Shown: positions 3,572 through 44,435 of the stretch, piece by piece
Numbering within the stretch: position 1 is the first letter of the stretch
Layout: each line of letters begins with the position of its first letter
Source: Lytechinus pictus
Lineage: Eukaryota
Direction of reading: 5' to 3'
Assembly: GCF_037042905.1 (NCBI RefSeq)
Contig: NC_087251.1
Location: 9,486,001-9,550,000, forward strand
DNA: 64,000 bases
Notes under the pieces: generated by a model
What the model was told of the DNA's origin: nothing
Seen by the model: only the letters and a program-made list of their open reading frames with translations
Databases searched by the model: none
Made by a program: the position numbers and the translations under genes

Positions 3572-3596
3572 ATGGAAGGAAGTTCCTTCCCTCAAG
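3572..3596 (+). CDS. Coding exon 1 (exon starts at acceptor 3548; MEGSSFPQ, phase 1)
   Basis: ttgtag acceptor at 3547, ACAATGG strong Kozak context, AAG|gtaatt donor. The 24 nt upstream of the ATG are in frame without a stop, so an upstream coding exon is not excluded. Confidence 0.6.
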
Positions 3597-6500
3597 GTAA
3601 TTGTTGTGTGAGTCTATAATAAAAAGGGGAAGTAATTTTTATGATGGAAATCTTACCCCAAAGATTTATAAAGAAGAGATCAACTTTTATATTTCCATTC
3701 TAATATAAGTTGCAGTTGTATTTTATTGAGTATATTAATAAAAATGATAGCTGGATAGGGTTTTGCCAGAGGCTGTAAAGTGCAACTATTATTGCCCTGG
3801 CTTTAGCGCTAGCTGCTGCTTTATCAGCAGTGTTTAGTGCACTCAAGGATTTAACCCTTTCACCTTAGCTGGGATAAGTGCACCAGGATAATACTTGAAA
3901 TAGCTGAAACAAAAATTGATAACTATATACCGTGTTTTATTCAGATTTTTAGTCATTTGGATTATTCTTTGCTATTTTTACACTATTTTCAACTTAAACT
4001 ATACAGTACAAGAATTGAGACAACTGTAATAAAAATATTATCTGTAAAAAAAAACCAGGATTAATATTGTCTTAAATAGTGGCTTAAAATATCTTTCTTT
4101 AGATATCATTTGTCAATTTTCAATGAACAAAAGGAGCTTTTAGAATTCTTAATTTGTTGAGTTATATAAGTCAATACAGTAGCTTAGAATGATAAAACAG
4201 ATATCTTTGCTTGGATCAGATTGTATGTTGTTATTTTTTTTTCTTTGATACAGAGATACCAAGGTATGGCTTCTATCTATCTCATCTCCTGGAAGAGTAT
4301 AAAGAAAATCAAAAGAATCTGGAAGTACAGGTCAGAAAACTTAAAACTTGAAAATTAATATTATGTTAACATGCTAGTATGATACTTAGAAAAGTGCCTC
4401 AGGTCGATTAGAAAGAGTTCCCCCATCAAGAAATCACTCGCAGGTCAGACACAGATACATCTACATTACCTTTCTTAGAAGGCACACACTTGTACAATAA
4501 TGTCCCCTTCCCTCAGATTATTATGCAGTGGTTTGAACATTTGATATGTATTGTATATGATTTATATTGTCATTGTGTTCTCTCTGAATCTTTTCAGTGC
4601 TAATGTCGAATGATATCTATCTTTTTTTCCACTTTTATGTATGCTGCATAATAGGTTCACAATTCATGAAAAATTGTTTCCAGCTTGAATTTGTTCATTT
4701 TGAATAAAAATGTAATGTTAAAAGTAGATATTTTTATCAAAGTACTACCTATTATTTTATTTTTCAGTTGAAGAATCTGAGTACACAATGTCGAGAGAAA
4801 GATGAAGATTTGAAGAATGTGAAGGATAAGCTTGCAGGTCACATCCGCTTCAACACACTACTCCAGTCAGAGAAAGGTACCCATTTAATTGAGTCAATTG
4901 CATTTTATTTGGATGTAAAGACAGTAATAATCTTACATGTTTCAAATATGTAATATCTCTAATTGTCTCATATGAATTTGTGACTAAGATAACTGTGAGA
5001 TTGCATAAAAATAGGACTACTGAAGTCACAAAACAAATAAAATCTTTTTTGTATGCAACAAATGTTTATATGCTCCCCCTGCTATTCCATTTATTTTAAT
5101 TCAATGAACAATGTGAATGTAAATGTGAAAGTTAATATATAAAGAATGTAAGAGAGCCTACTATTGTTATTTAATGTTCTTACTTGTACAGTGTGTTTGG
5201 AAGAGACTGTAGAGCAGCTGAGAGAGGAAGTTAAGTCATGTGATCACCTACTTCAGTCATGTGACTCTGTACTGAGGGAGAAAGATAGAGAGATCCGAGA
5301 GCTGCTTGTGGCAAAGGTATCTACCACTCGCTATTCACACTCCATTTTATAATAAAAGGGAACACATAACTAAGAAGAAATTTATTGAACCAAAAATGGA
5401 ATGGAAATATTAAGTTGGTATTACTAATAGGCCTGAATCAAACTGAATGGTTTACTGGTGTAATTTCCTGTAGACCAGTGGAAATAAAGTGAAATAAAGA
5501 CATTTTCAGTGTCAGATACTTTGACAATTAATGAGTTTAAGAACTTAATTTCGTAAAAGTATCATATCGACCATGTGGGACTATGGTAATAAAGGCATCC
5601 TTGTAGGACTTTATTAACCTGTGACTTTACAATATTGTTGCATTTGCAATGGCATATATTTACAATTACTAGTATTACGATTCCAGCAGAGGAATTATGA
5701 GCTTCAACCAACAATGAATATGCCCGTGCCTTTACACATACTGTAATGCAACAATATCTTAACACTACAGGCCAATAAATTCAGAGAAGAGTATTGAGAA
5801 ATCCTGCTCAGAAGTCTTGTATCCATAGTTCTACTTGGTTTCCAGATTTGGTGTTTAATATTGTGAAAGATTTAATTTGATAAGGGAATTTCGTTCAGTT
5901 ATTTAAACCATAAGTGAATCACCTCCAGATTCATCTTTTTCTTGATGTGTATGATTGCAGTACGATTTAGAACGTCGTGTTGCTGAGTATGAGTTCAAAG
6001 AGAAGGAGCTTCAAGGAATGGTTTCGGGTTTTCAGGACGACATCGGAGACTTGGCTTCAGAGAGGAAGAAACTTCGCAAATGTGTAAAGAAAGCCAGGAG
6101 ATTTCAATCCCCAAGTCAACAGGTATGGTTGTGAACCTCTGTCACTGTATACAAATGATGCATGGGTTAGAGTGGGTCAGTAGGAACTGTGTGCACAAGG
6201 TAACTTTGGCATGGTTTAGACCATAATGCCAAAGTTACCGCGTGCACACAGTTCCACTGACCCACGAATGAAACCCATGCATCATCTGTTTTATAGAATG
6301 GAAAAAATTTATTGAATAAACCACAAAAATTAATGATTTACCGGATGCATAATAATTTCATGCGTCCGGTAAATTCAATTTACCGGACGCATGAAAATAT
6401 TTACTGGACGCATGATTTTTTTACCGGACGCATGATTTTTTTTACCGGACGCATGATTTCTTTACCGGATGCATGAAAATTCCAAAATGTAATGCAGACC

Positions 6501-9500
6501 CTTTGATAACCCTGGACTGTCTGGACAACATAAATATGTATGCCTAACTTGATAATATGTTGGCACAAAGGCATTATTATACCCAAAATGCCAGATACAG
6601 CTTTGCATTGACTAGATCTATGAGGCAGCCTCAGACCTCCAATAGCTGTGTGTGTATGCCCGGGCCGCGCCGGGGGCCAGTGCCTAGGGCTGCCTGGGCC
6701 TGCAGTGGAGATTTGGCTGTGCAAAGCCAGCCCAGGGCAGTAGATCTATAAACGTTAGATCGTATGTCTGGACTTCTCAACTAATGAGTATGCAGGCAGT
6801 TTTAATCCCTATGACAATTACGGTACCGTATTTGTACTTAAAAGATCATTTTGCATCCTCTATTTGATTCATTCTGCCTTGATCGAAAATTCAAAATTTT
6901 GACGTAAACAAGCGTAACAGTACATGCGCGATGACATCACAATGACCTTTTCGGACGATAGCTTGTTTACAGTGGATATCGTTTTGAATATCGGGATATC
7001 GTTCATGCAGCCCAGTAAAAATTCTTGCATAGCTCTCAACCAATCAGATTGCAGGGATTTTCTCATCCATTCTATAATATTTCTTATAACCTTGACTGAA
7101 TTTGTGCAACTGATCTCCATCCAGCAAATTCAATTACCAATCGTTCATTGTGCTTTGGGGAAAACCCCTTTTTTGGGTTGGGACAAGCTGTTATTTAATT
7201 TTGCACAGTCTACTGCTGGTGCAGTAGTTTTACTAAAATGATATGTTTTCAGAATAATTGAGACTGACAAATGAATCTAGTTGTTCCTTATGGGCAATAG
7301 TGAAATTAGGAGGCTAAATACGCCAGCAAGAGCACAAATTAGTTCTATAGAAGTTCAAATCTATGTTCATAGCCCTATTTTTTCTATAAACTATATTCTA
7401 TCATTCATACAAACTTATTTCTACAATGTTTGTTAATGAGAAGCACCATGCAATTGTGTCTATATAGTGTGCTGAAAGATTATTTACTTTGCCATGTTAA
7501 TTTGATATCATTTTACCACCTATTTGCATTTTCTTATCTTTGAATATAATTTTTCAGGTCAAGGTTCCTGAACAAATAAATGAAGTAAATGAAGAGAGAG
7601 AAGTAGAGCTTGAGGTGAGTTCTATTACATTGGTAGTGATTGAAATTGAAACGGTTTATTAAGAAAACTTCATCACAGCAAAAGGCTGAATTGCAAAATT
7701 CTGTACAAGGTAAAATACAAAATATATACAATATCAATGACCATAACTAAATGACATGTAAAAGTAATAAAATAAATCTTATGTTGAAATTTAAAAAAAG
7801 GAGTAGAGTAGAATAATTGTAATCTTGGATAATTGTAACCACAGTATGATTCTATGGGGATAAAGTCAGTAATTCTATCATGTGCTTGCATTAATAAAAT
7901 AAGAAACAGAAATTATGAACAAATGGTATTTCTTTAAAGAATTGAAGATGAAATATAACTGTGCCGGAATAAGGGGGAAATGAAAAGGATGTTGATAAGG
8001 TTGGTAAAACTGATTTTGCTGATGAGATAAGTGTATTTCACCTGGCTTACACGGAAATAAGAGACATAAATCTAATTATTGATTGAATATTTTCTGGCTG
8101 TACATGTATAAACATGGAATTAGCATATAAAACAATTATACTAAGATGGGATAAGACAACTATTCCCATTGAAAACAAGCAATGCTACAAAGAGTCGTAA
8201 ACAGAATTTAAAGTAAACAAAAACATCATAATATTAGACAATAGCATATTAATTTTGTTTTGCATAATATTGATTATACATAATTTGGATATTGTTAACA
8301 CATTGATTGCATGTTGAGAAGTCGTATCATGTATTAATTAAATTAAATAGGCATGTGTTAATTAATCATAGATTTGGAAATGAATTACATATTAGATTGA
8401 TTGTTGAGTAGTCGGACCATGTATGGGACAGCGCTTTTACGATGGCGTTCTGTTCTACAGCGTACTTCAGTGTACATATTGCTGTAACGTAGTAAACGTT
8501 TGTGGACCGCCTCACGAGTTGGAGGTAGCCAGTCATGAAAGGGGGAGGAATGAAGACTCACGCCCTTTGCTAGTCTCATACATAGTCCTTCTCTCCGCTT
8601 GTCAAGAGTAGATAGGTTGAGCACTTCTAGTGCATGGTCATAATCTTGGTAAGCAGGCCCAAGCATGAGGCGGAATGTGCGTTTTTGTATCCCCTCAATT
8701 TGTTTTCTTTGTGATGCATCAAGTCCAGAGTGCCAAACTGGTGCACAGTACTCTAATGCTGGACGAACATAGGAGGAATGAATTACCTTCAAATCTCAAG
8801 GGGTAGTTTAAATTCCTTGAGGATGCAGAACATATGAAGCCTCATGCTTGCGTGCTTGGTGATCTCATTGACATGATAATGTTTATTTCAAATCATTCTG
8901 AATGCAAACTCAAGTAGTTTCATGAACTGGACTTCAGATTGTGACATAACCTATGATACAAGTTTAGGCATGGGATTACTGGGTTATTTAAGGTGAAAGT
9001 TCACCCCGAAATCAAGTTAGTCCTAATCAAAGGGCTCTTAAAGATATAGGAAAATATCAACAAAGGTTTGGAGAAAAACCATCAAACAATAATTTTATTT
9101 CAGTTTTTAATTATTTAATGACAAATGCAAGCATGTCATTCTTTCCCTGCATATTGGAAAATATTCAAATTCGATATATCTTTATCACATTACATCACAC
9201 ATATCAATGACAAATACTTTTTGAGTCATCATGATTATTTAAAAGGGGAATTTATGGAATTTTATTACATTACATATTGGCCAGGTGCTTCAATTTGACA
9301 CCAAAAATCAAACTTTAAAAATTCATAACTCTTTTGTGATGTATCTCATCAGATCATTATATTTTGCTTTTAATGAAAACTATCCTTATGTCATGGTGGA
9401 CTTGCCCATTGATTTATAGTGTTGAACATTTTTGTCCAGTGGATAAGTCTCCTGGCAGGAATCAATTCCTTGAAATGCTTATTTGCTGTAAATGGCTGGC

Positions 9501-12500
9501 CAGACCAAGCCAGGGTAATAATATCCAAGTACTCATAAATCATTTTACCATGTACTTATAAATAATTTCTTGTCTTTGAATATCATTTTTCAGGTCAAGG
9601 TTCCTGAGCCTATAAAGAAAGTAAATGAAGAGAGAGAAATTGAGCTCCAGGTGAGTTCTATTACATTGGTGATATTTCGTGACCTGGATTCACAAAAGAA
9701 TTTTATCCAATGGGATTACAGGAGTATTTATCAGTACATACACAAGAGAATCAGGGTCTCATCAATAAATACCAATTAAATTCCATGATTTCAGTAACTT
9801 TAAACCATAGCTTGAAACTTGTCATTGTCATAACACGTTTTTTGAAACATGACCATACCCAGTATGTTTTTAAGCACATATATGTGTGTGATATGGCTTT
9901 GTCTGAATGTCTTTCTGGAGGCTGAAGCCTAACCAATAGTTCACTGGCGTAAATCCAAGCACTGAACCTATTGTCCAGGGGGGGGGGGGGGACTATGATT
10001 TCACACCCCCCTTAAAAAAAAAAAACTTGAATAATATGACATCATGGATTTACGCCCATGCAATAGTTTGACCTCATATTTGGATTTGTATTAGTCTGTA
10101 CCTTTCCAATGTTTATGAAATACACTCGACATGTATGTGTATGTACACAGTTTCCTTTATAACTGCACACATACTTTGACCCTCTTTTTAAACTTGATCT
10201 GATCACAATGGATGAGATGGTATATGACATTATTTCACAACAGACCAAAGGGGGGGGCAAATTTGTCCGCCAAAAAATTTGACAAGCAAAAAAAAAAAAA
10301 AAAAAAGGTCTTCAACCGCAAGTAAAGGACAATTTGCACCAGAAAAAAAATTGACAAGCAAAAAAAAAAAAAAAGAAAGTTCAAAGCAGGGGGTCGTCAG
10401 GGATCAGTTTTGACTCGTCAGGGGGGGCAGGGATACGTCCTTTGCATGAGTTGTGACTCATCAGGGGGGCAGTCTGCCCCCCCTTAAGGCCTCTGCATAC
10501 CTTACGACTGTTCGTGATCCGATTTTGTAACAAATCGCATTTTGCTCATTTTTTGAAAATGTGAATGGAACATTTCATTTTATTTGAGGTTAAAATTAAT
10601 TGAAAGAATACTAATATAACAATTTTGAAAGGTTGCAAGCCTTTATTTTGGAGTAAAGGCCAAATCAGTTTCAAATCGTAGCTAATCGTACGACTGCTAT
10701 GACGTCATTACGACTAGATATTAAATTTGTTTTTATTCTAAGAAGGATGATAGCATAGTCACAGATTTGAAAATAGGTACATTTGTACGATGATTTCGAA
10801 CATCACAGTAAGATATTCCAAGTCTCAATATTAGCATCAAATTCTACTACGTTTTATTCCAAAATTGAGTCGCAGACCAATCGTAAGGTGTGCGGTCGCC
10901 TTTAGGTCCGCTAGTGGTGTTGGTGTTTCAATTACATTTCTGTTGTATAGAAATTGAACATTTCTGTTGTATAGCTTGTATGCAATAAGGGAAAGAGATA
11001 CTACAAGTATAAGTTTTAACTAGTTTGGGATGTTTTTTTTTTAAAGACAGGAATGCTGTTTTTTTTTTCAATGAATAAATTCTTGTTGAGACATTGCAAA
11101 GCTCAGCAAGAATTTATCCCCACTGTTTTTTTTAAAAGCTCTCTTTTATGGGACGTTTCTATGCTTACCTCAATATTATTTCATCAAGAAGAACATGTAG
11201 AAGTTCCATGTGATATTCAAGTTTATTGATAGTTTTGTAATAGCAGTGTCTATTTCATTAGCTTGTTTTTTAGCTCAACCGGCCCGAAGGGCAAGATGAG
11301 CTTATAAAATGCTGTGGTGTGGCGTCTGTCGTCCATCCACAATTTCAAAATGCTTCTACTTCGCCATTTCAAGTCCGATTTCAATTCTGTTTGCTTTATA
11401 TGATAGCACTAGGTGGGGGATTCAAAACTTGTACACAGAATTTTGAAACTCATTAAATATGCTAATTTATGCGCATTTTTCAAAATTAACAAAAATGCTT
11501 CTTCTTCATTTATTGACCGATTTTGAATTTTTTGCTTCCATCTGGTAGAGCTTTATGAGGTTCGCCAAACTTCTACATAGAATTTAGAAATTTTGACTAG
11601 AACAATTTTTATGCTAATTTATGCGAATTTAATTTATGCATATTTTTAAAAATTCGCATAAAATGCTTCTTCTTCTGAATTTGTTGACGGATTTTGATTT
11701 TTTTTCTTCCATCTGGTAGAGCTTCATGAGGCTCACCAAAATTCTCCACAGAATTTTTTGAAATTTTGAGTAGAAAATTATTTATGCTAATTTATGCAAA
11801 ATTCATAAATCACAGAAAATGCCTCTTTATTTGTTGACTGAATTTCAAAATGCTTCTTTGTCATTTCAAGTCTGATTTCAATTCTGTTTGCTTTTTATGA
11901 TAGCATTAGGTGGGGGATTCAAAACTTCTACACAGAATTTTGAAACTCATGTAATATGCTAATTTATGTGCATTTTTCAAAATTCACAAAAATACTTTAT
12001 TTGTTGACCGATTTTGAATTTTTTGCTTCCATCTGGTAGAGCTTCATTAGGTTCACCAAAATTGTACACAGAATTTCAAAATTTTGAGAACAATTTCTAT
12101 GCTAATTTATGCATATTTTTAAAAATTCACATAAAATGCTTCTTCTTCTGAATTTGTTGACCGATTTTGATTTTTTTTCTTCCATCTGGTAGAGCGTCAT
12201 GAGGTTCACCAAACTTCTACACAGAATTTTGAAACTCATTAAATATGCTAATTTATGCGCATTTTTCAAAATTCACAAAAAATGCTTCTTTATTTGTTGA
12301 CCGATTTTGAAATTTTTGCTTCCATCTGGTAGAGCTTCTTCATTAGGTTCACCGAAATTCTACACAGAATTTTGAAATTTTGAGTAGAACAATTTCTATG
12401 CTAATTTATGCGAATTTAATTTATGCATATTTTTAAAAATTCACATAAAATGCTTCTTCTGAATTTGTTGACCGATTTTGATTTTTTTTCTTCCATCTGG

Positions 12501-15500
12501 TAGAGCGTCATGAGGTTACCAAACTTCTACACAGAATTTTGAAACTCATTAAATTTGCTAATTTATGCATATTTTTAAAAATTCACATAAAATGCTTCTT
12601 CTGAATTTGTTGACTGATTTTGATTTTTTTTCTTCCATCTGGTAGAGCTTCTTCATTAGGTTCACCGAAATTCTACACAGAATTTTGAAATTTTGAGTAG
12701 AACAATTTCTATGCTAATTTATGCGTATTTTAAAAATTCATATAAAATGCTTCTTCTTTATTTGTTTACCAATTTAGATTTAGTTTTTCTTCCATCTGGT
12801 AGAGCTGCATGGGGAACACCAAACTTGTACACAAAATTTTGAAATTTAGTCTAGAAAATTATTAATGCTAATTTATGCAAAATTTATTCATAAATCACAA
12901 AAAATGATATTTCTCCTTCATCTGTTGATCAGTTTCAATTTTGTTTGCTTTATATGATAGCTCTAGGTGGTGATACAAAATTTCAACACAGAATTTTGAA
13001 ACTCATTAATATGCTAATTTATTCATATATTTTCAAAACTCACAAAAAATGCTTATCTATTTGTTGATTGATTTTGATTATTTTTGTTCCATCTGAGAGC
13101 TACATGAGGTTCATCAAGGTTCTACACAAGAGTTAAGAAATTTCGACTAGAAAATTGTTAATGCTGATTTATATAAAATTTATTCATAGATCACAAAGAA
13201 TGCTTCTATGTCATTTCTTCATCAATTTTAATTCTATATCCTCAATTTATGTCACCAATATCATTCACTACAGTGTCAACTGGGCTGAAATTAAAATTGT
13301 GTTAAATTTCGTTGCGAGATGCCGGATGAGCTCCACATCATTGATGTGCTAGTTTACTACCAGAATCGGGGTGCCTTTTTCAGATAAAGTTAGAAATTTA
13401 TACTTTTCCGCACATTTTTCATCTTCAATGGATACAAAAGGGTCCATTGTAGGTTATTTCCCATTTTTAAAAAATCATTTCTTAACGGTATCCCATAGTA
13501 AAATGTTTTATCATAATATATAGGCCTACTTTTTCTTTAGATTTGGCATTGATTTATAACATATATGGTAGACTATATGACACAGTAGCATGACAATTTT
13601 TTTTTCATTGCATTGAACCTTTAGAGGGGGAATGAAGTGTTTACTTCCAAATCATGAACATAGATTTATCCAAATTTCAAGATGAGAGGGAAAAATCACA
13701 TTGAAAGCAGCCAGCTTATGTTATGTTCTTTTTCTACTCTTGTATAGGCAAAAGCTGAACTTCTCAATGCCATCAGAGAGATAGCTTTCAAGATATCAAA
13801 AAGCCCTCAGAAAACCATCAATCCCGGGCTTAAAGTAGACCAGGCTGATGAAGGAGCATCTGTTGAGGGTCAACAGAAACAATCTACTGGAGATGATGCC
13901 AAAGAGGGCTATAAAGCCTTTTTTGTGAGGGAGTCTGATCTTTTTACCATGGATAATTCGCTGATCGAGAAGAAGACCAGTGAGTGCAGTCTCAACTATG
14001 ACTCCTTTTTTAATTACAGTTATGATGTTTGTGGCTCAGGATTGGAGGATGAGAGGCAGCTGTCTGCCAGGAAAGATAGAGGTGAAGATCAAAGACTTGA
14101 AGGGATCTCTTTCCCTTCACAAAGGCTGATAATAGAAGCTAGAGATATAGGAAGGAAGAGACTGAAAAATACATGGCATCTTACAAGAGAGAAACCCAAG
14201 ATCAATAATACAGAGGTGAGATTCATGAAGGATTCAGATGGCCAAGAAATGAAGGTTTCAGGTGTTTTGTGTAGATCCAGTCATCATGGTGATCTTCCTT
14301 CCTTGGACAAGTCTGATGATAAGGGGGAGGAGGTGGAAGATGAGGTTACCTTATCTTGTCACAATCTCTACAGTGATGTCATGAATGAACTCGGCTGTAA
14401 GAATGCTGCTGCTGCGATGCCAATTGTCACTGCAACAACCGCCACTGAGGATGCTCCAGAAGCACCCTCTAGCGGAACCTATGACAGGGACTGCGTCAGC
14501 TTGGAGGATATCTCTTCAGGTTACAGTGATGACCTACTGAAATCAGAGGAGTGGAGGGCATCTGGTGATTCACTTCCTAGTTCAGGGGGAAGTAGTTGCG
14601 TAGACTTTCTAGATGATGATGCTAATATTAATATGCAGCATGTAGCCAACAAGACCACTGCATCAAGAAAAATAGTGAACCCTGTGGAGGGAGAGGAGGA
14701 CTCTGAAGACATTTCAGATAATGAGGATTATGACTCCAAGTTTTTTAAAATGCAAAAGCATTTATCTTCCAACAACTCAAATGAATCTGAATATGGGAAA
14801 GGAAATAATGCACAAACTGTAGAATCTCATAGGTTTCCAGACAGCTTTTCCATAGCCAAAGGAACCAAACCTAATCAGGTAGATGAAAGCACTGATCCCA
14901 AACATGTTGGTGAGAGTTCAGATGACCTCCTCTCATGGGAATCACCACAGCGATTAGGGGAGATGAAGAATGATGACATGAGCTCATCTCATAGGATTAT
15001 TCCTCTCTCCGGAGATGAGTTACAAGAGGATGATCTTGATTTTTGTGTCGCAGATGAGGATTATGATACCAAGGATCGTGATAAAGAAATCAGTGATGCA
15101 TCACTTGATTACAATGAAGACCCTACAGTTCCTTGGGATGAAAGAGTTCGTGTTAACCAAGACACTGGACGCTCACCCATCACAAACAGAATCTTCCAAG
15201 GTGAACAACAATTTGAAATATCCTCAGGACAAAGGAAGTCTCCCAATCCTACTAAGATCAAGAAGGATGTTACTAACAGGTACATGAAAGGCAGCGGCCT
15301 GGATCCAGAAGTCGCTGAGAGGAAAATACCTCAACGCATCACCTTTGGAAGGAAAGACATGGAGAGAAGAGTTGCTAATTATCAAGAAAAGACCCTTGAA
15401 GATCCCTTTTCCATCCGTCATTCCAAGCATGCCAGGTACAGGACTCCAGAGAACCGTGATGATCTCCATCTTGAAGGCATCCATGATGTGAATGGGACTA

Positions 15501-18500
15501 ATAGTGATGGGTCTGTAGGTTCTTGTGATAGTTACGGAGAGGCATCACCGGCCGAAGGTCTCATACTACGCAAACAAGTCATGGAGCACTACGCCACCAG
15601 GGCTAATGACAGGTATGTAGAGATCTCTGTATGATTTCTGTAATTAAATTTGCTTCAATCCAAGATTTAATGTAAGATATATATTCACAATGTAGTCCTT
15701 GCAGCCTTTAAAACATGTAGCTTTACTAGAAGTACTGTCTTGGTTGAAATGAATTTATGGAAAGAGGAGGAGTTATTTTGTTTTATTTGGAGATAAACTT
15801 TATAGGCACTGTTCTCACTACCATCCTAAAACTAGTTTACTGGAAACTAGTTTAACGCGTAATGAGAACGTTCGAAGTGTTCTTGGAAGCGATCTTCCAA
15901 ACTGGTTCAGAAAACCATCTCGCGATGTTAAAAAATTGCTTTGACTCGTTAAACTGGTTTAGCATAAGTGAAGACACAACTGTTATTTGGGAAGTGATTT
16001 TTGCACATTTCGAGTGCGCTACTCCACACACTGTATGTGGAATGCCTAAGCTGCGGTTTCAAATTTCACGCAAAACATGTCACCCCCCTGAGAGTGTTCC
16101 AATAGCAACAAGACCACTTTCCACTTTCGGGTGATCAAATGGGAATGCTAGCAAAGCAATCTTCCAAATTGGTTTCCTGAACCGATTTCCAGTAAACTAG
16201 TTTTAGAAAGTATAATGGGAATGGTGTTATTCATGAGCTTCTCTGGATGCCAGTACAATGCAGAGTGCAGTATCAGATCCTACTGCTCTCCAGAGCTTGG
16301 CCAAGAGCTGTGCAACTTGTCTAATCTGTGTACGCCAGCTCCGGCCAGAACTTCGTTCTGCTGGACTCATTCTTCAAGTGCCCATTATCCTTCTGAAAAC
16401 ATACAGGAATAGAGTTTTTTCATCAGTTGCTCCTCGTCTTTGGAAGACCCTACCTATCCAACTTCGTAGCTGTAACAACATTGAGACCTTCAAGTCTGTA
16501 CTAAAGACCTATCTTTTCCAGCAACTGTGTGAATAATATGTGGCATTTAGGGGAGCAGGCACCTTCGAATGTTTTTTTACAGAGAAATGGTGCGGTGCCT
16601 TATAAATGCTGACATATTCTATCATGAATATTTGATAGTTCTAAAAACGTTTAATTTATAAAACTCTTCAGATAGAAGAAAGAGTTAATCCTGATTAGAT
16701 AATTGTTTTATTGTCATTATCTGAAAGTTACACAATGTTAAACTGTGGAAGCCATTCTTAGATACTTGTACCATTTTAGTATCTGTATTGAAAATTGAAA
16801 TCAATTTCAAGGTATAAGTTGATATGTGGGAAGCATATAAGTCATTGTTGCATCTGGGCTCCATTATATAAATGTTACCATTATGGTAACTTTGCCATCC
16901 AATGGGAACTTGCATGGAATCCTTGATTTTGATTGGCTGTTGGGCCATGTTACCATAGTAGTTACCATTGGATGGCAAACTTACTATAATGGTAACTTTT
17001 CTGCAACGGGGCCCTATGGTAAATATTGAAGAGTGAATTGTATTTAAAATTTGTGTCGTAAAATCATTCATACCTTTTGGAGCTCCTTTTAGAGCGGACT
17101 GATACGCTTGTTCTTCATATTGAAGTGATTTGTTAACTGTGAAAAGAAAAATGAGCTGCAAGAATGTACAGTGACATTAAAAAACATGTTAATATACAGT
17201 TTAAAGATGGAGCAATGTACATTTACATAAAAATGTCATCAGTTGAATGGAATATGTTTGTTTCATGATTACATGTGCTTCAACGTTTTTTAGACAAGAG
17301 GCCTACTTTTTCCTCGTGGATCGATTACTGATTCCTAGATAGCAGGCGATGTTACTTAAGGTGAATCCAAAGAAGAATATACAGTAGAACTAGAAGAGAG
17401 ATCCTAGTTTCTAAATTAGGTTTGTAATCAATTCAAAAGAGAAAGATTCATGAACACTATTGAGTACACTTTTTATTGACCCATCTTACTCGGGATTAAT
17501 GCAAAGCAGTAACTTCATTGCAAGAAAGCAAAGGAACTTGAAAAAGTTGATCATTTTTTTTACAATTGATTACAGTTTCAATGTTTCATATTTTTCCATT
17601 TAACTTTTATGGTTTCATGTTTGTCATTATTTTTTTCTTTTTTGAGGGGGGTGGATATCACTCAAGTAATGCTATTTTCCTTTCCCAATGGACAAAAAGA
17701 GGGAACTTTTTCAAAATGGATATCCACTATGTATAATTTGTTGGCCCATGATCCAGTCATGCCTGCATTCACCTATCCAAGGCTCAGTGACCTTTAGAAA
17801 TGATATCATGTATAAATAAAAAAGTTATCCATTTATGTTTTTGTGTTGCCCTTTTCATTAAGAAAAAAACCTCTACTCCCAAAAAATTGAACTTATATAG
17901 GCTCCCCCCCCCCCCCCATTTGGACGTATTGAAGGCACATCTGGTCATTATCTTTCATGAATCATGATGATAATTGAAAAGACACATGATATTTTAAAAT
18001 GTTAGGAATTTCTTTTTAGAATGACATGAAAAACATGGTTCTTTATTCGCTGGACATGAAAGGTCAGGGGAAATAAATACCTTTTTGATACTTACATTTG
18101 GTAATTCTTGTTTCATTCATTATTATTGAATTTGGTGTCTTACATCGAAAAGGCATCATGGTTTGGTGCAAATAACAAACTAAAAAATAACATTTTCCTG
18201 TTTTGCTTTAGTAAGAATTGGGCAGGAACTTGTGTAGATCAAATTACTACCGCATTTAATTTAGTATTCCTATATCTCTCATGACGAGTTATTTTAGCCT
18301 GTAATAAGTTATGTTCAGGGATATTGTAGGTAGAAAAAGGGAAAACCCCAGATGTTTCATGAAGCAGTTGCCATGACAATATTATAAAATAGAAAGCAGG
18401 CAGGTCAAAAGCTTAATTGGGTATGTATGGTGCAGCAACGCCCAAGACAATAGGATAATATTCAGTCCTTGAAAACACATATAGTCGCTAACTCTTTATA

Positions 18501-24500: not shown

Positions 24501-27500
24501 CTATAATCATTAAAAAACTAAAATCTAGCACATTTCTTTGAAATGGTCTCAAACAATTAATTTGAATTTATTTGTGATCTAATATAATCATTATTTTTCT
24601 GTATCTCCAATTAGAGCATGGCATTACGTGTACATGAAGCAAGAAGGTTCAAGATTGATGTTCTACAAGGATAGAATGGGAAGGGACTTAGATGCCCATA
24701 TTGAAGAACCTCTAGTACTAAGCAATGCTATCATATCAGTGGCTAAGGATTACTCCAGGAGGAAGCATGTCTTCAGAGTCCAGTAAGTAGCGTTCTTTTT
24801 AACTTTTTAGACCATGTTCTCTTCTACGACCTTAACTAGTTCAGTGAAAACCACTTAAACATGTAATGGAGACTCTCAAAGCGGTCTTGGTAAGTGGTCT
24901 TCCAAACCAGTTTGGAAAACCACCATGCGATGTGGTTTTAAGTCCCCCTCCAATATATAAAAACAAACATTTTCACCTCTTTTTTTCAAGCTCGATTTAT
25001 AATGTAGTTCTCATACAGAACATATGACTTTGATGGCCATGTTTGATACATATAATAAATTATGTATCATATGAGTGCTCCTTGTTGTATGAACAGGATA
25101 AATCAGACAAGCTTTCTAAGTACGTGAAATACATCTTGGTTTTGTTTATCATGGGACACAATGTATTAGACACCGTTCTCACTACCATCCTAAAACTAGT
25201 TTACTGGAAACTAGTTTACTGGAAACTAGTTTAATGTGTAATGAGAACGATCAAAGCGATCTTCCAAAATGGTTCATAGAACCACCTCGCGATGTAGTTT
25301 TCAAGATCGCTTTGCCTCGTTAAACTGGTTTTAGTGTAAGTGAGTACACAACCGTTCTTCGGGAAGCGATCTTCGAACATTTTGAGCACGCTACTCCACA
25401 CGACAGGTGAAGAATGCCTACGCTGCCGTTTCACAACGTGTCACACCACTGAAAACGTTTCCATAGCAACAAGATCACTTTAAGTGAAGTGATTTTGAAA
25501 GCCACTTTTTGTGTGATCAAATGGGAACGCTAGCAAAGCGATCTTTCACACTGGTTTCCTGAAACGGTTTCCAGTAAACTACTTTTAGAAAGCGTAATGG
25601 GAACGATGTACATACAACCCATTTGTTTAAACTGAGAATGACTTTTAGTCATTTACTGTGGACATGTATTAGAATTCCCAGAACAGGAGACAACTTTAAC
25701 CTTTCATTTTTAGACAAGAATATTTACCATTGATAAGAAAATAGCTTTTGGTTTATTTTGCAGCTCAATATTATTTGAAAATGAGCTCTTGATGGCATTT
25801 CTCTATCTTGACAAAAGTCCTTTTTTTTAATTTGTTTGCCCAATTTGTTTGTATAGGTGGGTTGGTCTGTTTTTGTGTGACATATTTCTTTGTCTAATGG
25901 AAGAATGTACTTTCGATATCGATATATGACGTACACAACAAGAATATTGACATGCAGTATTCATCTAACGTCAAAAATATCTTTATAGGGTGGGAAATAG
26001 AAAATGACAGTTAAGTGAATGTTGTTAATCTTATTTTTGATTTTTTTTTCAGTAGTTTATACAGATTATATCAGAAAATGCTTTGGAAGTAATGAAAAAA
26101 CACAAAATATATGAGCTTTATTATTGTTGAAAATTATCATTTGAAACAGGTATCACAAAAGTAAATATATTTTCAATAGGGTGTCCTCTTTTTAATCAAC
26201 TAGTGCATTCAAATTCTGTACATGATTTTTGTTTTAAATAAAAAATGTTTATTGCTATTTCATGAATAAAAATAGTCCCTCTGATTCTGAAGGATAACAG
26301 AAAAAATTAAATAACATAAAATTATCCTAGCTACCACTCTTTGGAAAAGATAAATCACCATCATATTTCAAATATTATCCATCACTAATTATGTTCATCC
26401 ATACATTTTTTTTGTTACATTATTTTAAGTACAGATAACTACATCCAACTCTTTTAGCAATGACACTGCACCATGTTTTAGTCCATGATATTGGTAATAA
26501 TGTAGGCTGAGTGACTCAGATTTATGTCCTTTAAACCATGATGGCCATAAAACAAAAAATAGATATATAATGCATAACTTTTACAAAGTAAATTAGAGAC
26601 ATTGATCACTATTCAATCCATCTTCATTATGCTACCAATACTAGAGATGAGCTTTAACATTATGTACCTTTTGTGATCTGATTGATGATCCATGTCCAAT
26701 AGGAGCAATCTCTTTCCATCATGTAACATAAGGCTTGCTAAGAAAAAGAGATTGGTGTCAAAGCCGCATCTATCCCGTGCTAGATGTGGAAAGGTAATAC
26801 CAGGAGACTATTGATTTAAAGAAGGGATATGTTTCTGTCAATTATAGCCATCATTCGTCATGGAAATTGGAATAGCAGGGAAGAGTCCTCTAATGCCCCA
26901 AAGAATGATTCCATTAATTACGTGGCCGGGATTTTAGAATGCGGCTGGCAGGCAGGCAGGCCATGCCAATCAAACAATAAATGCTACTCCTATCCAACTA
27001 TTGTCGGCATAAATTTACAATTTTTCAGCTGAATATTCTCATCTCATCAGGAAACGTGCAGAAATATCATTGATGAAATTGGTGTATCCAACTTTTGTTC
27101 CTTGCCAACATTTATTTCAACTTTTGCTTCAAACTGACATTGTTTGATGCATGATTTTGCAGGCATTGTGGCTAAATGCCAGAATGTTCTTGAGCTTTAT
27201 CATGATCAAGGAAACAACAATAATTTGCATGTCATTTATAAAGAAGGGTTGTGGCTAGTGGCCAGAAAAAATAATTATGATCTCATAAATTTGTTCATTA
27301 ATCTTACTTTTATTTTGATTTTACATTCCTCTTGAAATTTGGCAGTGTGATATTTATCATAGAGCTAATGTACTTCAATCAACATTGTCACATAATAAAG
27401 AAAGAAAGAAATAGACTCTCCCAAATGCCAAAGACAACATCTCTCAAACAATGTCTTCATTCTTGAAGTTGCGTATCATTTTCTTTTAAGAGAAATTTGT

Positions 27501-34349: not shown

Positions 34350-34387
<38 letters not shown>

Positions 34388-35530: not shown

Positions 35531-35562
<32 letters not shown>

Positions 35563-41500: not shown

Positions 41501-43959
41501 CAATCATGATGTAAGATAGCAAACAGTGAGTTATTGAATGATATTTTCACTATTTCTCATTTATTTTATCACGATGTTCAATCAAGTGAGTAGCTGGAAA
41601 GTAATTCCGGCGGCTAGCTCAGCGCGCGCTGAACGCATAATACTATAGTACGCACAACACCCAGGCATTGAGTGTACTGTTATGGTCTGGTATGTCGACT
41701 TAGTTCATGGCCGTGCAGCGATCCCCTGGCGTTTTTTCTTCTTTTCTTTTGTCTTTGACTCCACTTTTATATCCTCTGGATCATTTCCACTCATAGCTCA
41801 TTCCACAGAACAATCTTGAACCAAACGTATAGTATTCTTTCTCGGCCTTCTGAGTTGTTTTCTATATTTAATTACGCTAGGGGTCACCGTCACACATACA
41901 AACGCAATTCGGAAGTGAGTTGAAGACAGAAAGATATATAGTAATTAGTATACATCTCTATGGTTGAAGACAACAAGAACGGTACGGTAGCTCGACAGCT
42001 AGCTGCGCCGGAGCGGGCGGCCGGTCGGCACAAAGCAATTCCGCAACCAACTGTGTTTTTTTGCAAGAGCCGCGTCACACGCGGATAAATATGTCATAAT
42101 AAACACGTCTGCTACGTTATCGACTGGTGAGAAGATCTCGATCAAATTTCATATTATTCACCTTGAAATTATTCCTTTAGGGTCCATGGTATCATTCTGA
42201 GGGAATTCACATATTTGGAATAATAGTACGGCCACAAATATTTTAATCATTTCCTCTTTGCAAGTTCTATGGCTCGCAGATACAACTTCAACTGCAGTTA
42301 TTCCATATGAAGGAGTACGTGCATAGTACACAAAACGGCACTGCCTTGATTACTACACCGGGACCGAATACCCCCCGGTGACGTCACACTCAAAGAACAC
42401 CCGTCTCGGTAGGCATTGCAGGAGCGAACTCAGGGAAAATGGGTAGGGATAAATCGTTCAAATTCACTATATTGAAAAAAGAAAATGGGGGGTCGAATCA
42501 CCTATTAGTGTTTGGGGGGTTGTAAGGTTGCTATTAATGTAAATATCTCAATATTTGGAATCGTCTTCTTAATTCAACTTTAAGACTAAGATAATTTCCA
42601 GAATTATATTCATAGGCAATCATTTTCTATGGCATTTCGATTGCACTTTCCAAGGAGTTTCATTGTCATTGACTCATTGTGCTCTTGCAAAGTCTTGTTA
42701 AATTGATTTACTGCAACAGAATTTTGGCTTTATATCATTTATATTTCTGTCCTGTTAATTTTAGTTGAGGAAACCACACAAGCAGAAATGGAATCTTACT
42801 TTTTCACATTTTTTTTTTTTTTTTGGGGGGGGGCTCTCTGCACCTTCCGAGAAGACATTTGTTCCATGGCAAGTCAATTCTAGGTCCTACTATCAATCAT
42901 ATCTCTAGAAATAAATTTCTGGTCTGCTTCTTTCATCAAGAAATAAAAATAAGTTTAACCGTAGTCAAAACTGATATATCAATTGTAAATAACTGAGCAA
43001 TAGAAACTTGCAAGTGAATTTATATATTATCTTGCAACACTCCCTTGCGGCACTGTCACATCATTCCGAATAAAGAGAATAATTTAAAGGTGAGGTCCAC
43101 CACCACTAACAAGTTGATTGGAAGGAAGTAAATAATAAGCAGGTAATGCTGGATATTTAATTTATTTTTCTATATTCATCAAGATCAACTTGCTATTGTG
43201 GTGAATTTGACCCTTAAATGCTAAATTTTATAAGGATTAAATAAAATGTACATCTTCAAATGAATGTAGTTTGATAGTTGTTTTTTCTTTAGGTTCTTTG
43301 TGTTGAGGTACATTATGTACATTAAGTAATTTTCATTAAATCAGAAAATGAAAAATTTGTGTAGGGTGTGTATGAGTTGTATAAATAAACTTCCTTCCTC
43401 CTTCCCAAAAAGGTCACTGTTGTATGAACAGTATGATTTTACTCAAGTGTTTTTTTTTTATTTGTTTAAGTATATTATACTGTCATGCCTTTTTCTTTTG
43501 TATTGTATAATTTGACATGTCTTTTATGGATGTAAATAAATAAAATATGCAACTTACATGTACTAACAGTTTACCTAGTTGGAAAATGATATACAGATAT
43601 TTCGATACCTTTCGCATATGAACTAATTTACAGTGCTGCAGGTACTATCATATTCAAGATCACTGTGTCATTGTACTAATTATCTGTTATTTTTTCTTTC
43701 ATATCCTTCTTGTCCTACCTATTATAGACTTCCAAATGGCCACCAGTATTTGTTTGCTGCCAAGGATGATCGTGAGATGATGTTCTGGGTCTGTCGTCTG
43801 GATGCATGCGGAGCTCCTCCCATGTATCGCCATGACCACGGCTACTCCCGCCTCCCTGCTGCCATCACCACCATTCCTCCACCTACCAGCGGCTCACCCA
43901 CCAGATCAGAGAGATTGAAGAATATGATCAAGGGTGGTATTTCAGCACTGCTCAAGTAA
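3572..43959 (+). CDS. Multi-exon gene (~958 aa): coiled coil + long acidic disordered region + C-terminal beta-spectrin-type PH domain; join(3572..3596,4254..4330,4768..4876,5192..5316,5961..6122,7558..7614,9594..9650,13748..15612,24615..24782,43728..43959)
   Basis: All exons have AG/GT boundaries, polypyrimidine tracts and matching phases, giving one open frame of 2877 nt. The spliced C-terminus AEGLILRKQ...ANDRAWHYVY...FYKD...EEPLVLSNAIISVAKDYSRRKHVFRVQLPNGHQYLFAAKDDREMMFWV aligns by eye with the beta-spectrin PH domain (EGFLNRKH...SRSWHNVY...FYKD...DYKKKKHVFKLRL.DGNEYLFQAKDDEEM..W). Confidence 0.85.
4254..4330 (+). CDS. Coding exon 2 (EIPRYGFYLSHLLEEYKENQKNLEVQ)
   Basis: T-tract plus cag acceptor, CAG|gtcaga donor, phase 1 to 0, open frame. 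Confidence 0.75.
4768..4876 (+). CDS. Coding exon 3, coiled coil (LKNLSTQCREKDEDLKNVKDKL...)
   Basis: tttttcag acceptor, AAAG|gtac donor, phase 0 to 1; matches ORF 4768+. Confidence 0.8.
5192..5316 (+). CDS. Coding exon 4, coiled coil (VCLEETVEQLREEVKS...REKDREIRELLVAK)
   Basis: tacag acceptor, AAG|gtat donor, phase 1 to 0; heptad-like pattern. Confidence 0.85.
5961..6122 (+). CDS. Coding exon 5, coiled coil (YDLERRVAEYEFKEKELQGMV...FQSPSQQ)
   Basis: ttgcag acceptor, CAG|gtatgg donor, 162 nt, phase 0-0, no stop. Confidence 0.85.
6148..7078 (-). mobile_element. Hairpin-ended non-autonomous element with asymmetric IRs (CryptonV-like or Helentron-like)
   Basis: ~145-nt imperfect hairpin 6148-6293; 12-bp IR ttatagaatgga (6291) / tccattctataa (7066); CCAATCAG near the far end; internal ~21-bp tandem repeat TTTACCGGACGCATGA at 6337-6478. 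Confidence 0.65.
7558..7614 (+). CDS. Coding exon 6, 57-nt micro-exon copy A (VKVPEQINEVNEEREVELE)
   Basis: tttttcag acceptor, GAG|gtgagt consensus donor, phase 0-0. Confidence 0.75.
8385..8960 (-). mobile_element. 5'-truncated LINE, 3' end of ORF2 (L2/Crack/Daphne-like, CR1 group)
   Basis: ORF 8385-8792 has RPALEYCAPVWHSGL...IEGIQKR...L.TL..RR...CRTER...S.VPY..RLLN, the typical post-RT region; frameshifted further 5'. Confidence 0.85.
8989..9408. mobile_element. Degenerate Kolobok-like MITE
   Basis: ttaaggtgaaagttcaccc ... ggtggacttgccc ends; related ends recur near 43084-43217, 48115 and 60881-61383. Confidence 0.45.
9594..9650 (+). CDS. Coding exon 7, 57-nt micro-exon copy B (VKVPEPIKKVNEEREIELQ)
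   Basis: tttttcag acceptor, CAG|gtgagt donor, phase 0-0; 48/57 nt identical to exon 6. Confidence 0.75.
10487..10901. mobile_element. PIF/Harbinger-like MITE nested in another short element (~10248-10916)
   Basis: TIR aggc..gcataccttacga / tcgtaaggtgtgc..gcct with TTA TSD on both sides. Confidence 0.7.
11266..13355 (+). mobile_element. Helentron-associated non-autonomous element (HINE/DINE-1/Tsp-like) with internal ~150-bp tandem repeats
   Basis: T-run insertion site, subTIR agctcaaccgg ... ccggatgagct, GTCC-type microsatellite, ~12 core repeats (cttccatctggtagagc...cttctacacagaattttgaaa...atgctaatttatg), 3' stem cacatca-t-tgatgtg then ctagttt. Confidence 0.8.
13748..15612 (+). CDS. Coding exon 8, 1865-nt giant exon: S/D/E-rich low-complexity region ending in the first strand of the PH domain
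   Basis: tgtatag acceptor in frame with the 569-aa ORF 13925+; GACAG|gtatgt donor, phase 0 to 2. Confidence 0.9.
15806..16229 (+). mobile_element. Harbinger-like MITE family copy (other copies 24811-24940 partial, 25168-25608, 47115-47486)
   Basis: Imperfect TIRs gttctcactaccatcctaaaactagtttactggaaa / tttccagtaaactagttttagaaag..taatggga, shared among copies. Confidence 0.7.
16258..16612 (+). mobile_element. L2-group LINE 3' fragment
   Basis: LRS...L.VP...KTY..R.FS..APRLW..LP..LR......FKS.LKTYLF motif followed by a gc..tataaatg-type 3' tail. Confidence 0.8.
16856..17015. mobile_element. Short palindromic MITE
   Basis: gttaccattatggtaactttgccatccaatgg / ccattggatggcaaacttactataatggtaac inverted arms, gggc..gccc ends. 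Confidence 0.65.
18496..18700 (-). mobile_element. Highly degraded L2-like LINE 3' fragment
   Basis: RFGDKTFEKVTPKLWHSVPQDIK resembles the G.R.F...AP.LWN.LP..I motif. Confidence 0.5.
18877..19270. mobile_element. Harbinger-like MITE related to 10487-10901
   Basis: agcctggtgcacaccatgcga ... gcatattgtgcgctgggct ends in TAA/TTA context; internal tgacgtcat. Confidence 0.5.
19413..20157 (+). mobile_element. MITE with GGGGC.GTATTCTG TIRs (Harbinger-like)
   Basis: ggggccgtattctgaaca ... cagaataccacccc; the left half is present inverted at 31555-31916. Confidence 0.7.
20956..21942 (+). mobile_element. Tc1/mariner non-autonomous element, copy 1
   Basis: TA|CAGTGCGTATAAAAAAAGTTTAC ... GTAAACTTTTTTTTATACGCACTG|TA. 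Confidence 0.9.
23089..23564. mobile_element. PIF/Harbinger-like MITE
   Basis: TIR aggtggttttagaccgcct / aggcggtttgaaaccacct, 3-bp TSD ATA. Confidence 0.75.
24615..24782 (+). CDS. Coding exon 9, PH-domain core (RAWHYVYMKQEGSRLMFYKD...KDYSRRKHVFRV)
   Basis: ttag acceptor, CA|gtaagt donor, 168 nt, phase 2-2; PH motifs W, FYKD, DY..KHVF. Confidence 0.9.
25168..25608 (+). mobile_element. Harbinger-like MITE, same family as 15806-16229
   Basis: Colinear similarity over its whole length; extra 15-bp duplication actagtttactggaa. Confidence 0.75.
28718..30862. mobile_element. Non-autonomous TIR element (Sola-like, tentative) with reiterated GTAATGTCAGTTACC motif
   Basis: ggcattttc ... gaaaatgccc ends flanked by ATAT; motif at ~29074, 29248, 30428-30473 (x3), 30655, 30836. 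Confidence 0.5.
30909..31334. mobile_element. MITE with G-run/C-run termini and 8-bp TSD
   Basis: TSD TCAGAATT at 30901-30908 and 31335-31342; ends ctggggg..gta / tacccccctagg. Confidence 0.7.
31555..31916 (-). mobile_element. Partial inverted copy of the 19413 MITE
   Basis: Reverse complement matches 19413-19800 (e.g. aaaatatggagaaaagacaatgttcagaatac). Confidence 0.8.
32017..32830 (+). mobile_element. HINE/Tsp-like Helentron derivative with (GGC)n and ~160-bp core repeats
   Basis: subTIR GTCTCACCTGCA (32023) / TGCAGGTGAGAC (32797), T-run flanks, 4 core repeats with caaggtcaaaggtca. Confidence 0.85.
34354..34383. repeat. (CT)n microsatellite
   Basis: Direct reading. Confidence 0.9.
34546..35531 (-). 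mobile_element. Tc1/mariner non-autonomous element, copy 2, inverted relative to copy 1, within (TA)n
   Basis: CAGTG...CACTG ends with TA flanks; its reverse complement is colinear with 20956-21942. Confidence 0.9.
35683..36384. mobile_element. TIR element with 4-bp TSD ATAT (unclassified)
   Basis: aaactccttaaaaaaagtttggaaatctga / tcagatttccaatcttttttaaggggttt. Confidence 0.7.
36389..36573. mobile_element. hAT-like MITE
   Basis: Perfect 12-bp TIR CAGGGGTGTGAG / CTCACACCCCTG; internal TTTCAGA/C repeats; TSD imperfect. Confidence 0.7.
37027..40523. mobile_element. Academ-like non-autonomous transposon (3.5 kb) with internal tandem duplications and nested insertions
   Basis: Perfect 16-bp TIR TAGTCAGGGGCCTTAG / CTAAGGCCCCTGACTA, TAG..CTA termini, 3-bp TSD AAT; internal repeats 37080-37900. 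Confidence 0.75.
38290..39328. mobile_element. Two adjacent related GC-richer TIR elements rich in CCGAAT/ATTCGG motifs, nested in the Academ-like element
   Basis: caagggttacaccaaaacc (38896) / ggttttggtgttaccctag (39309); related ends at 38296 and 38865-38890. Confidence 0.5.
41124..42579. mobile_element. Kolobok-like non-autonomous transposon
   Basis: TTAA|AGTTGAATTAAGAAG ... CTTCTTAATTCAACT|TTAA; internal IR gagtgtgacgtcaccgggggg (41311) / ccccccggtgacgtcacactc (42371). Confidence 0.8.
43728..43959 (+). CDS. Terminal coding exon 10: PH C-terminal strand and helix (LPNGHQYLFAAKDDREMMFWV) plus tail
   Basis: Long pyrimidine tract plus atag acceptor, phase 2; TAA at 43957-43959. Confidence 0.9.
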
Positions 43960-44435
43960 AATCCATGTTTACACTAGGCCTGCCTATGCCAGTTTACCAA
44001 GCTCATGTAGGATCATCTGTGTTTGTAAGATTTACATTCAGGAATATTCTAGATTGTCATCATAGGGGTATATCATTGCTGCACAAATAATGCATTTGCA
44101 CTTTGTAATCTTCATTAGCTTCATTATTTTGCTTTATGATTGGCCTTGTTGATCTCAGTCCTTGTTGCACATTTTCATAGATAACAACACAGATTTTGTT
44201 TTCTGTTTTTTCTTACTTTTAGCAGTTTGTCAAGTACAATCTCAATGAACACAAAGCATTTTGCAGGAATGGAGTAAATTTAATTGTATCAGTTATCAAA
44301 GCAAGTGAATTCTAATATCAAATGCAATGCACCATTTGATAAAGGTCATCATGCCCCCTCCCCTCCCTCCTCCCCCTTCCCTGGCCACTTAATAGTTCCG
44401 AGGCCTGTTGAAAAATGAGTTGCAGTCTAACACAA

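Follow-up and report, generated by a model that had tools for sequence, protein, structure and literature searches.

LOC129265544 of Lytechinus pictus belongs to an unnamed family of echinoderm and hemichordate coiled-coil proteins that end in a beta-spectrin-type PH domain

Conventional beta-spectrins (PH domain structures 1btn, 1wjm and 1dro) are proteins of ~2300 amino acids (aa) which carry CH domains and spectrin repeats and terminate with a PH domain. PH domains of the same Pfam family, PH_9, are found in the EFA6/PSD proteins, Sec7-PH exchange factors for Arf6 which also carry a coiled coil, and a PH_9-type domain is located internally in ARHGAP21 and ARHGAP23, which have a PDZ-PH-RhoGAP organization. 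A long coiled-coil or disordered body followed by a C-terminal lipid-binding PH domain is known in LL5/PHLDB. The gene analyzed in this work, LOC129265544, resides in a stretch of 64,000 nucleotides (nt) from the plus strand of the Lytechinus pictus genome (chromosome C7:9486001-9550000, hereafter the window), and is the L. pictus member of an unnamed, uncharacterised family of echinoderm and hemichordate proteins. Members range from 660 to 1330 aa, and share with conventional beta-spectrins a C-terminal PH domain of the same subtype (37-41% identity to the solved domains), two phase-2 introns, a last exon which covers the end of the domain, a basic tail and the stop codon, and the residues of the inositol-phosphate site. 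In place of CH domains and spectrin repeats, they carry a predicted parallel coiled coil and an acidic linker, 575 aa long in L. pictus. The distance from the other systems is larger. The Sec7 domain of EFA6/PSD is not found here, and the EFA6-type protein P0127 matches the family with an E value of only 1.8e-5, versus 1e-15 for spectrins. ARHGAP21 is the second-best structural neighbour (2dhj, 2j59), but has PDZ and RhoGAP domains and an internal PH domain, whereas here the PH domain is terminal. LL5/PHLDB have a PH domain of another subtype and an FHA domain, not found here, and no sequence relationship to them was detected. The explanation favored, at a probability of about 0.6, is that of an ambulacrarian coiled-coil-PH family with 3' exons derived from beta-spectrin, whose members would work as dimeric membrane adaptors.

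The PH domain of LOC129265544 is split over three exons. The large exon, coincident with an acidic open reading frame (ORF) at 13748-15612, encodes strand beta1 and continues into the beta1-beta2 loop as far as the R that opens the R-x-W motif, and ends as GAC AG/gtatgt (the slash marks the splice site). The middle exon has the borders attag/A GCA TGG and GTC CA/gtaagt, and the last one begins as tattatag/A CTT CCA and runs to a TAA stop. Both introns are of the GT-AG type and in phase 2, and interrupt the protein at R/AW and Q/LP. In the stop-to-stop translation of the plus strand the spliced frame is open to the stop codon (...AEGLILRKQVMEHYATRANDR/AWHY...KHVFRVQ/LPNGHQYLFAAKDDREMMFW...); the joined reading, in its longer form, is AEGLILRKQVMEHYATRANDR-AWHYVYMKQEGSRLMFYKD...RKHVFRVQ-LPNGHQYLFAAKDDREMMFWVCRLDA..., ending with ..SPTRSERLKNMIKGGISALLK and the stop. 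The Strongylocentrotus purpuratus orthologue, LOC100893159 (P0003, 1330 aa), has the last exon, the same C-terminal tail and identical junctions (..HAFRVQLPNGHQCLFAAKDDREMMYWVCRLDA..). At protein level the last exon matches the end of P0003 with 83% identity, and its acceptor, frame and stop are intact. The gene extends for ~59 kb and has ~15 coding exons, for an expected protein of ~1,300 aa. The NCBI protein (P0001, 882 aa, named "uncharacterized protein") is short at both ends, since the model takes an internal ATG at 3572 as start, and a stop at 24783 which arises from CA/gtaa read as CAG TAA. Because of this reading, which leaves out the last exon, the model ends within the sole recognisable domain of the protein. 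PH_9 scores accordingly 38.5 bits on P0003, above the 28-bit cut-off, and 25.5 bits, below it, on P0001.

Several lines of evidence identify the donor of these exons. A conventional beta-spectrin gene of L. pictus, with spectrin repeats upstream of the PH exons, is located on the minus strand at C7:20080622-20103000 (~20.08 Mb). Its PH domain is encoded by three exons, separated by phase-2 introns at ..KKASNR/SWNHVY.. and ..YVFRLK/LADASEF.. The positions and phases of both introns are identical to those of LOC129265544, and the last exon likewise extends to the stop codon. Saccoglossus and Antedon orthologues also carry these two introns, as does a beta-spectrin gene of Tetraodon. The L. pictus EFA6-type gene, in which the Sec7 exons (C18:6.106-6.119 Mb) go with another PH_9 domain (exons at 6.087-6.090 Mb), has its PH domain cut at other positions, and no intron at either of the two sites. 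Similarity does not stop at the domain border. The tail which follows the PH domain reads ..SPSK.DR.KN.IKG..SAL.K in the family, and aligns with ..SPGKREKDKEKRFSLF.KKK of beta-spectrins; homology therefore embraces the entire 3' end of the gene, stop codon included. On the evidence of borders, phases and tail, the three terminal coding exons form one block, homologous to the three coding exons that close a conventional beta-spectrin gene. The capture of 3' exons from a beta-spectrin, put forward in the first-pass annotation of the window, which was made from the sequence alone, is thus upheld, as are the three-exon PH domain, the beta-spectrin subtype, the coiled coil and the acidic linker. 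As an observation apart, the L. pictus beta-spectrin gene shares its chromosome with LOC129265544, at a distance of 10.6 Mb and on the opposite strand.

Sequence and fold agree on the subtype. A phmmer search of PDB sequences retrieved beta-III spectrin (1wjm, 4.9e-12), Drosophila beta-spectrin (1dro, 1.3e-11) and mouse beta-spectrin (1btn, 5.7e-11), and ARHGAP21 (2dhj) far below them, at 4.2e-5. In an AlphaFold model of residues 1165-1330 of P0003, built from a 15-row alignment, the mean predicted local distance difference test score (pLDDT) is 79, exceeding 90 in the PH core and falling near 50 in the tail. The top two Foldseek matches of the model are 1wjm (template modelling score by target 0.75, 41% identity) and 1btn (0.88, 37%). 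Assignment of the PH domain to the conventional beta-spectrin subtype is backed in addition by the tree, the intron positions and the alignment of the tail.

The tree was inferred from 114 PH domains and 115 columns (LG+C20), and rooted on ARHGAP21-type PH domains. Family members and conventional beta-spectrins form a clade (96/84), from which both the heavy beta-spectrin clade (98/81) and the ARHGAP21 outgroup are left out. Together with the shared introns and tail, this indicates that the donor was, in all probability, a conventional beta-spectrin gene, and that the event took place before echinoderms and hemichordates parted. A donor among the deuterostomes, or in Ambulacraria, is slightly favoured by the distribution of introns. 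The second intron alone is present in a tick beta-spectrin gene, one intron at or near the second position in a rotifer gene, and neither in a flatworm gene. A third intron, at AKDE/EE, found in fish and tick beta-spectrin genes, is absent from the family and from the urchin beta-spectrin. A sponge-like metagenomic beta-spectrin, P0119, was called as one unbroken ORF, and is uninformative on ancestral introns. A metagenomic protein of 481 aa, P0024, groups in the tree with conventional beta-spectrin PH domains; its beta-spectrin-like PH domain follows an unrelated N-terminal part, its C-terminus is hydrophobic, and it may represent another, independent capture of the same type of module.

The extent of the family was determined by a HMMER search of 1.84 billion representative proteins, in which the PH domain plus tail was used as query. 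Members were found in all five echinoderm classes, represented, beside the sea urchins described, by the echinoid Diadema setosum (1095 aa, E 1e-46), the asteroid Patiria miniata (406 aa, a partial model, E 1e-36), the ophiuroid Amphiura filiformis (702 aa, E 3e-34), the holothurian Apostichopus japonicus (656 aa, E 3e-26) and the crinoid Antedon mediterranea (660 aa, E 3e-24), and in three hemichordates, Glandiceps talaboti (903 aa, E 1e-24), Saccoglossus kowalevskii (690 aa, E 2e-24) and Ptychodera flava (702 aa, E 2e-23). Every match reaches the C-terminal end of the protein, and the layout is the same throughout, a coiled coil being followed by a low-complexity linker and by the terminal PH domain. 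The exon layout is also common to L. pictus, Saccoglossus and Antedon, in that the linker exon starts the PH domain and two phase-2 introns follow. The next-ranked matches are C-termini of beta-spectrins, with E values of 1e-15 or weaker. No family member outside Ambulacraria was found among the 150 best matches, which is to be read as not found rather than absent. Among these, mid-length PH_9 proteins considered as candidate non-ambulacrarian members were rejected, P0149 being a SAM-PH, P0060 a RasGEF-PH (RalGPS-like) and P0127 a Sec7-PH protein; the remainder carry spectrin repeats. The proteins of the family are annotated as "uncharacterized", or have been given spurious coiled-coil names, and LOC100893159 is mentioned in no paper found. 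Identity between L. pictus and S. purpuratus is 87% in the coiled coil, 88% in the PH domain and 83% in the tail, and drops to 54% in the linker, a pattern which reads as that of two constrained modules with a spacer between them.

Apart from PH_9, the sole Pfam family detected, no domain could be assigned to these proteins. Spectrin repeats (PF00435), Sec7, PDZ and RhoGAP domains were not found by Pfam in P0001, P0003 and P0004, nor was a CH domain found in the same proteins and in residues 1-365 of P0003. True beta-spectrin fragments of like length match PF00435 strongly, and both PDZ and RhoGAP were detected in the ARHGAP21-type matches P0122 and P0136. No Sec7 exon lies near the locus on C7. 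The linker (575 aa) contains 118 D+E versus 72 K+R residues, is low in hydrophobic residues and has an isoelectric point (pI) of 4.65, while PH domain and tail are basic (pI 9.7). The predicted coiled coil covers ~145 residues. Linker, coiled-coil exons and four intronic ORFs gave no Pfam match above threshold. A word-index protein search with the acidic exon retrieved only the gene itself and one strongylocentrotid fragment, and feature and structure searches of the ESM Atlas, for which residues 1-560 of P0003 and the entire Antedon protein served as queries, yielded nothing beyond generic coiled-coil or PH clusters at chance-level scores.

The 5' end of the gene lies outside the window. The exon at 3548-3596 has an acceptor at 3547/3548, and its frame stays open 5' of the ATG, reading VSTGYLLT, colinear with ..SFLPTQGSMSYPQ of S. 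purpuratus. At the N-terminus P0003 exceeds the NCBI model of L. pictus by 365 residues. A genome search with tblastn located five open coding exons at C7:9470710-9476649, corresponding to positions -15290 to -9351 of the window, which encode ~345 aa and are 53-81% identical to P0003. The first exon starts with MNPVSAGCGDNLEDGK, and a second conserved motif reads LEASRKLCCELYENLL. Both N-terminal motifs, M..VS.GCGD and L.E.L.ASR.LC.EL, are found also in S. purpuratus, Diadema, Apostichopus and Amphiura. Colinearity with S. purpuratus suggests that the upstream exons are spliced to exon 3548. No Pfam family above threshold was found in the 365-aa extension (P0003:1-365).

These results modify the first-pass annotation in part. 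Its PH exons were right, and the gene model better than the public one in this respect, but ~345 aa at the 5' end and two exons of 57 nt were missed, and the exon at 3572, taken as the first, is internal, five coding exons being located 9-15 kb upstream of the window. Spectrin repeats, Sec7 and GAP domains, reported as lacking, are indeed not found by the Pfam scans, nor is a CH domain. Upstream spectrin-repeat or Sec7 exons, or a match to a known conserved family, had been indicated as findings contrary to a chimeric gene; no such exons were found, and the architecture does match a conserved, though uncharacterised, family. The gene had been held to be lineage-specific. In a narrow sense this view is abandoned, since, beside the echinoids, one species each of the asteroids, ophiuroids, holothurians and crinoids, and three hemichordates, possess proteins built alike. 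The homodimeric coiled coil, suggested in the same annotation, is in line with structure prediction. Residues 366-560 of P0003 are predicted to form a parallel, in-register homodimer over positions 368-512. The interface score ipSAE is 0.54 (three runs), while the best among three controls scores 0.00; at least 70% of the contacts, which are heptad-spaced, are common to the runs, and the pLDDT of the partner is at least 74. In calibration, 21 of 30 proteins with structures solved as pairs attained the mark set for the predictor, versus none of 23 solved as single chains.

Beta-spectrin's PH domain binds Ins(1,4,5)P3 and phosphatidylinositol 4,5-bisphosphate (PtdIns(4,5)P2, or PI(4,5)P2) at a non-canonical site located between the beta1-beta2 and beta5-beta6 loops; the site uses a conserved R/K-x-W motif, and affinity is weak, ~40 uM (PMC3344901). 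Four residues, K20, R33, W35 and Y79 in the numbering of alignment A1, are invariant across the family and beta-spectrins, and correspond to the Lys of strand beta1, to R-x-W in loop beta1-beta2 and to the Tyr in loop beta5-beta6. The contact residues of 1btn, which we take to be Lys8, Arg21, Trp23, Tyr69 and Lys71, presumably map to the invariant columns. The conserved residues point to lipid binding by the PH domains of the family. A scenario may be drawn on these premises. By the time of the common ancestor of echinoderms and hemichordates, the exons for PH domain, tail and stop of a beta-spectrin would have been joined to an unrelated coiled-coil gene. The resulting protein would consist of a conserved N-terminus (M..VS.GCGD..), a short helical motif, the coiled coil, a fast-evolving acidic linker, the PH domain and the basic tail. 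The dimer would present two PH domains, each a weak phosphoinositide binder, at the end of long, flexible acidic arms, and would bind PI(4,5)P2-rich membranes by avidity, because the non-canonical site of beta-spectrin is preserved. With its N-terminal part and coiled coil holding a partner, the protein would serve as an adaptor or tether at the membrane. A more far-reaching proposal is advanced with limited conviction, and may well be wrong. In early Ambulacraria, or just before, the three terminal exons of the conventional beta-spectrin gene could have been duplicated and fused to a coiled-coil gene, giving rise to a clade-restricted class of dimeric phosphoinositide tethers, acting outside the spectrin skeleton at the membrane sites of the skeleton. 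Such a tether could compete with, or pattern, cortical beta-spectrin in eggs and embryos.

A number of data weigh against the interpretation favored here. The family is grouped in the best tree, but support, over 115 columns, is weak (69/0; 70% of bootstrap trees). Moreover, it is placed beside the conventional beta-spectrin clade (86/88), not within it, which makes any date for the capture tentative. Two stranded RNA-seq runs, sampled to ~6%, were examined over positions 43200-46199. Only run X21 covers the last exon, with a depth of 0.72 and 1.9 in the 100-nt bins of 43700-43899, or about two reads; a 24782/43728 junction is not listed among the reads over this interval. Of the words of the large exon, 98% are present in contig set X18 and 87% in X19, both sets being of unrecorded type, but neither contains any word of the last exon. 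A truncated isoform of the NCBI type may exist, or even dominate in some samples. The dimer predictor is less well calibrated for eukaryotes, and predicted or disordered chains fall outside its calibration. Lipid binding, dimerisation in vivo and the role as a tether are putative.

Where the PH module came from, and when, may be viewed in other ways. It could be imagined that the urchin lineage took in recent times the 3' exons of its own beta-spectrin, giving a product of ~950 aa which begins at window position 3572. The NCBI model does begin at 3572, and the PH exon borders equal those of the L. pictus beta-spectrin. This possibility is extremely improbable, being contradicted by crinoid and hemichordate orthologues with the same architecture and the two introns, and by the acceptor of exon 3548 and five intact upstream exons colinear with S. 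purpuratus. In addition, the PH domain is only 39% identical (middle exon) to that of the L. pictus beta-spectrin, no closer than to that of human beta-III spectrin. At the opposite extreme, the PH and tail module could have left conventional beta-spectrin before the divergence of bilaterians, the fused gene having been lost outside Ambulacraria. The tree is in favor of such an ancient paralogue, in that the family, together with the metagenomic beta-spectrin fragment P0017 and a long-branch SAM-PH protein, appears as the sister group of all conventional PH domains sampled, and is not nested with the PH domain of the urchin. The stem is however long (0.24 + 0.44 changes per column), and its basal placement could result from a long-branch effect. 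A tree constrained to unite the family with the L. pictus beta-spectrin is only 4.2 log-likelihood units worse, and is not rejected by the approximately unbiased test (p-AU 0.415). The intron at R/xW has been seen only in beta-spectrin genes of deuterostomes (fish, urchin), not in those of tick, rotifer and flatworm, the lack of the AKDE/EE intron is common to family and urchin beta-spectrin, and the 150 best matches include no member from outside Ambulacraria. An ancient origin of this type is deemed rather unlikely, and a capture no later than the ancestor of echinoderms and hemichordates is preferred.

Nature and function of the product may also be seen otherwise. In L. pictus the main transcript could pass 24782 into the intron, and encode a non-folding PH domain devoid of the last strand and of the C-terminal helix, the exon at 43.7 kb being rarely or never used. 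The end of the NCBI model at 24783, an AATAAA at 25054, ~270 nt after the middle exon, the lack of last-exon words in X18 and X19 despite their large content in large-exon words, and the couple of RNA reads, from one of two runs, are all in keeping with truncation. Word-index protein searches with the PH region retrieved only urchin sequences, or intron plus exon ORFs from Logan contigs, and no spliced L. pictus transcript. Yet the last exon has 83% protein identity to S. purpuratus, with acceptor, frame and stop intact, and is conserved as far as crinoids and hemichordates, which is not expected of an unused exon. The few X21 reads are of the strand expected for a plus-strand RNA, and none falls in the 500 nt of intron preceding the exon; Logan contigs, moreover, demonstrate presence, not absence. 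A truncated main product is hence considered improbable. Equally doubtful is the notion that the PH domain mainly binds proteins, as the ARHGAP21 domain binds Arf1, and that the family consists of soluble scaffolds rather than membrane adaptors. The top matches in sequence and in fold do include ARHGAP21 PH domains, one of them in complex with Arf1 (2j59), and the weak affinity of beta-spectrin PH domains for lipid leaves room for this role. All the checkable residues of the inositol-phosphate site (K20, R33, W35, Y79) are however invariant, the strongly basic character of PH domain and tail is at odds with it, and similarity to beta-spectrin PH domains is far greater than to ARHGAP21. The membrane adaptor remains the function preferred. 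The region just past the stop codon deserves a separate remark. An interspersed repeat is located at window positions 44400-45000, where both strands are covered to a very high depth by RNA runs and contig sets, and many variant letters and loose ends are seen; the repeat would confound the mapping of the 3' untranslated region.

Table 1. Coding exons of LOC129265544 within the window
Feature	Position	Strand	Basis or remark
Internal coding exon (NCBI ATG at 3572)	3548..3596	+	acceptor ttgtag/GT at 3547/3548, donor CAAG/gtaatt
Coding exon, start of the central coiled coil (EIPRYGFYLSHLLEEYKENQKNLEVQ)	4251..4330	+	exact P0001 mapping; 90% identity to P0003
Coding exon, coiled coil	4768..4876	+	P0001 mapping, P0003 comparison
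Coding exon, coiled coil	5192..5316	+	P0001 mapping, P0003 comparison
Coding exon, end of the coiled coil	5961..6122	+	P0001 mapping; predicted dimer interface covers P0003 368-512
57-nt coding exon (VKVPEQINEVNEEREVELE), tandem duplicate copy 1	7558..7614	+	86% identity over 132 nt to copy 2
57-nt coding exon (VKVPEPIKKVNEEREIELQ), tandem duplicate copy 2	9594..9650	+	S. purpuratus has one such exon
Large coding exon: conserved AKAELLNAIREIAF motif, ~575-aa acidic disordered linker, first 21 PH residues	13748..15612	+	
Middle PH exon (AWHYVYMK...RKHVFRVQ)	24615..24782	+	NCBI model continues into the intron as CAG TAA
Last coding exon: PH strand beta7, C-terminal helix, conserved basic tail (..SPTRSERLKNMIKGGISALLK), stop	43728..43959	+	absent from the NCBI model

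LOC129265544 is not a new kind of molecular machine. It is a domain-shuffled PH protein, and the shuffling of PH domains is a known theme. The analysis corrects the public gene model, and defines an unnamed protein family which spans echinoderms and hemichordates. It also provides a clean, datable case of domain capture, in which exon borders, intron phases and the tail following the domain betray the beta-spectrin donor. Sea urchin embryos are easily manipulated, and the predicted dimeric PI(4,5)P2 adaptor could be tested at the cortex of eggs and embryos.

Minor features of the window may be added (Table 1). The two exons of 57 nt are 2 kb apart, their identity was measured including the flanks, and both are part of the NCBI model. 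S. purpuratus has a single copy, and the tandem duplication is therefore probably recent, having occurred in the Lytechinus lineage. An ORF of 135 aa lies antisense within an intron (8385-8792, minus strand; ..YVRPALEYCAPVWHSGL..QIEGIQKRTFRLM..); it has no Pfam match, and presumably resembles the C-terminal region of the reverse transcriptase of a non-LTR (long terminal repeat) retrotransposon. Finally, positions 56441-56865 are occupied by 425 N, an assembly gap or mask, beside a low-complexity tract which encodes poly-Leu/Thr in one frame.

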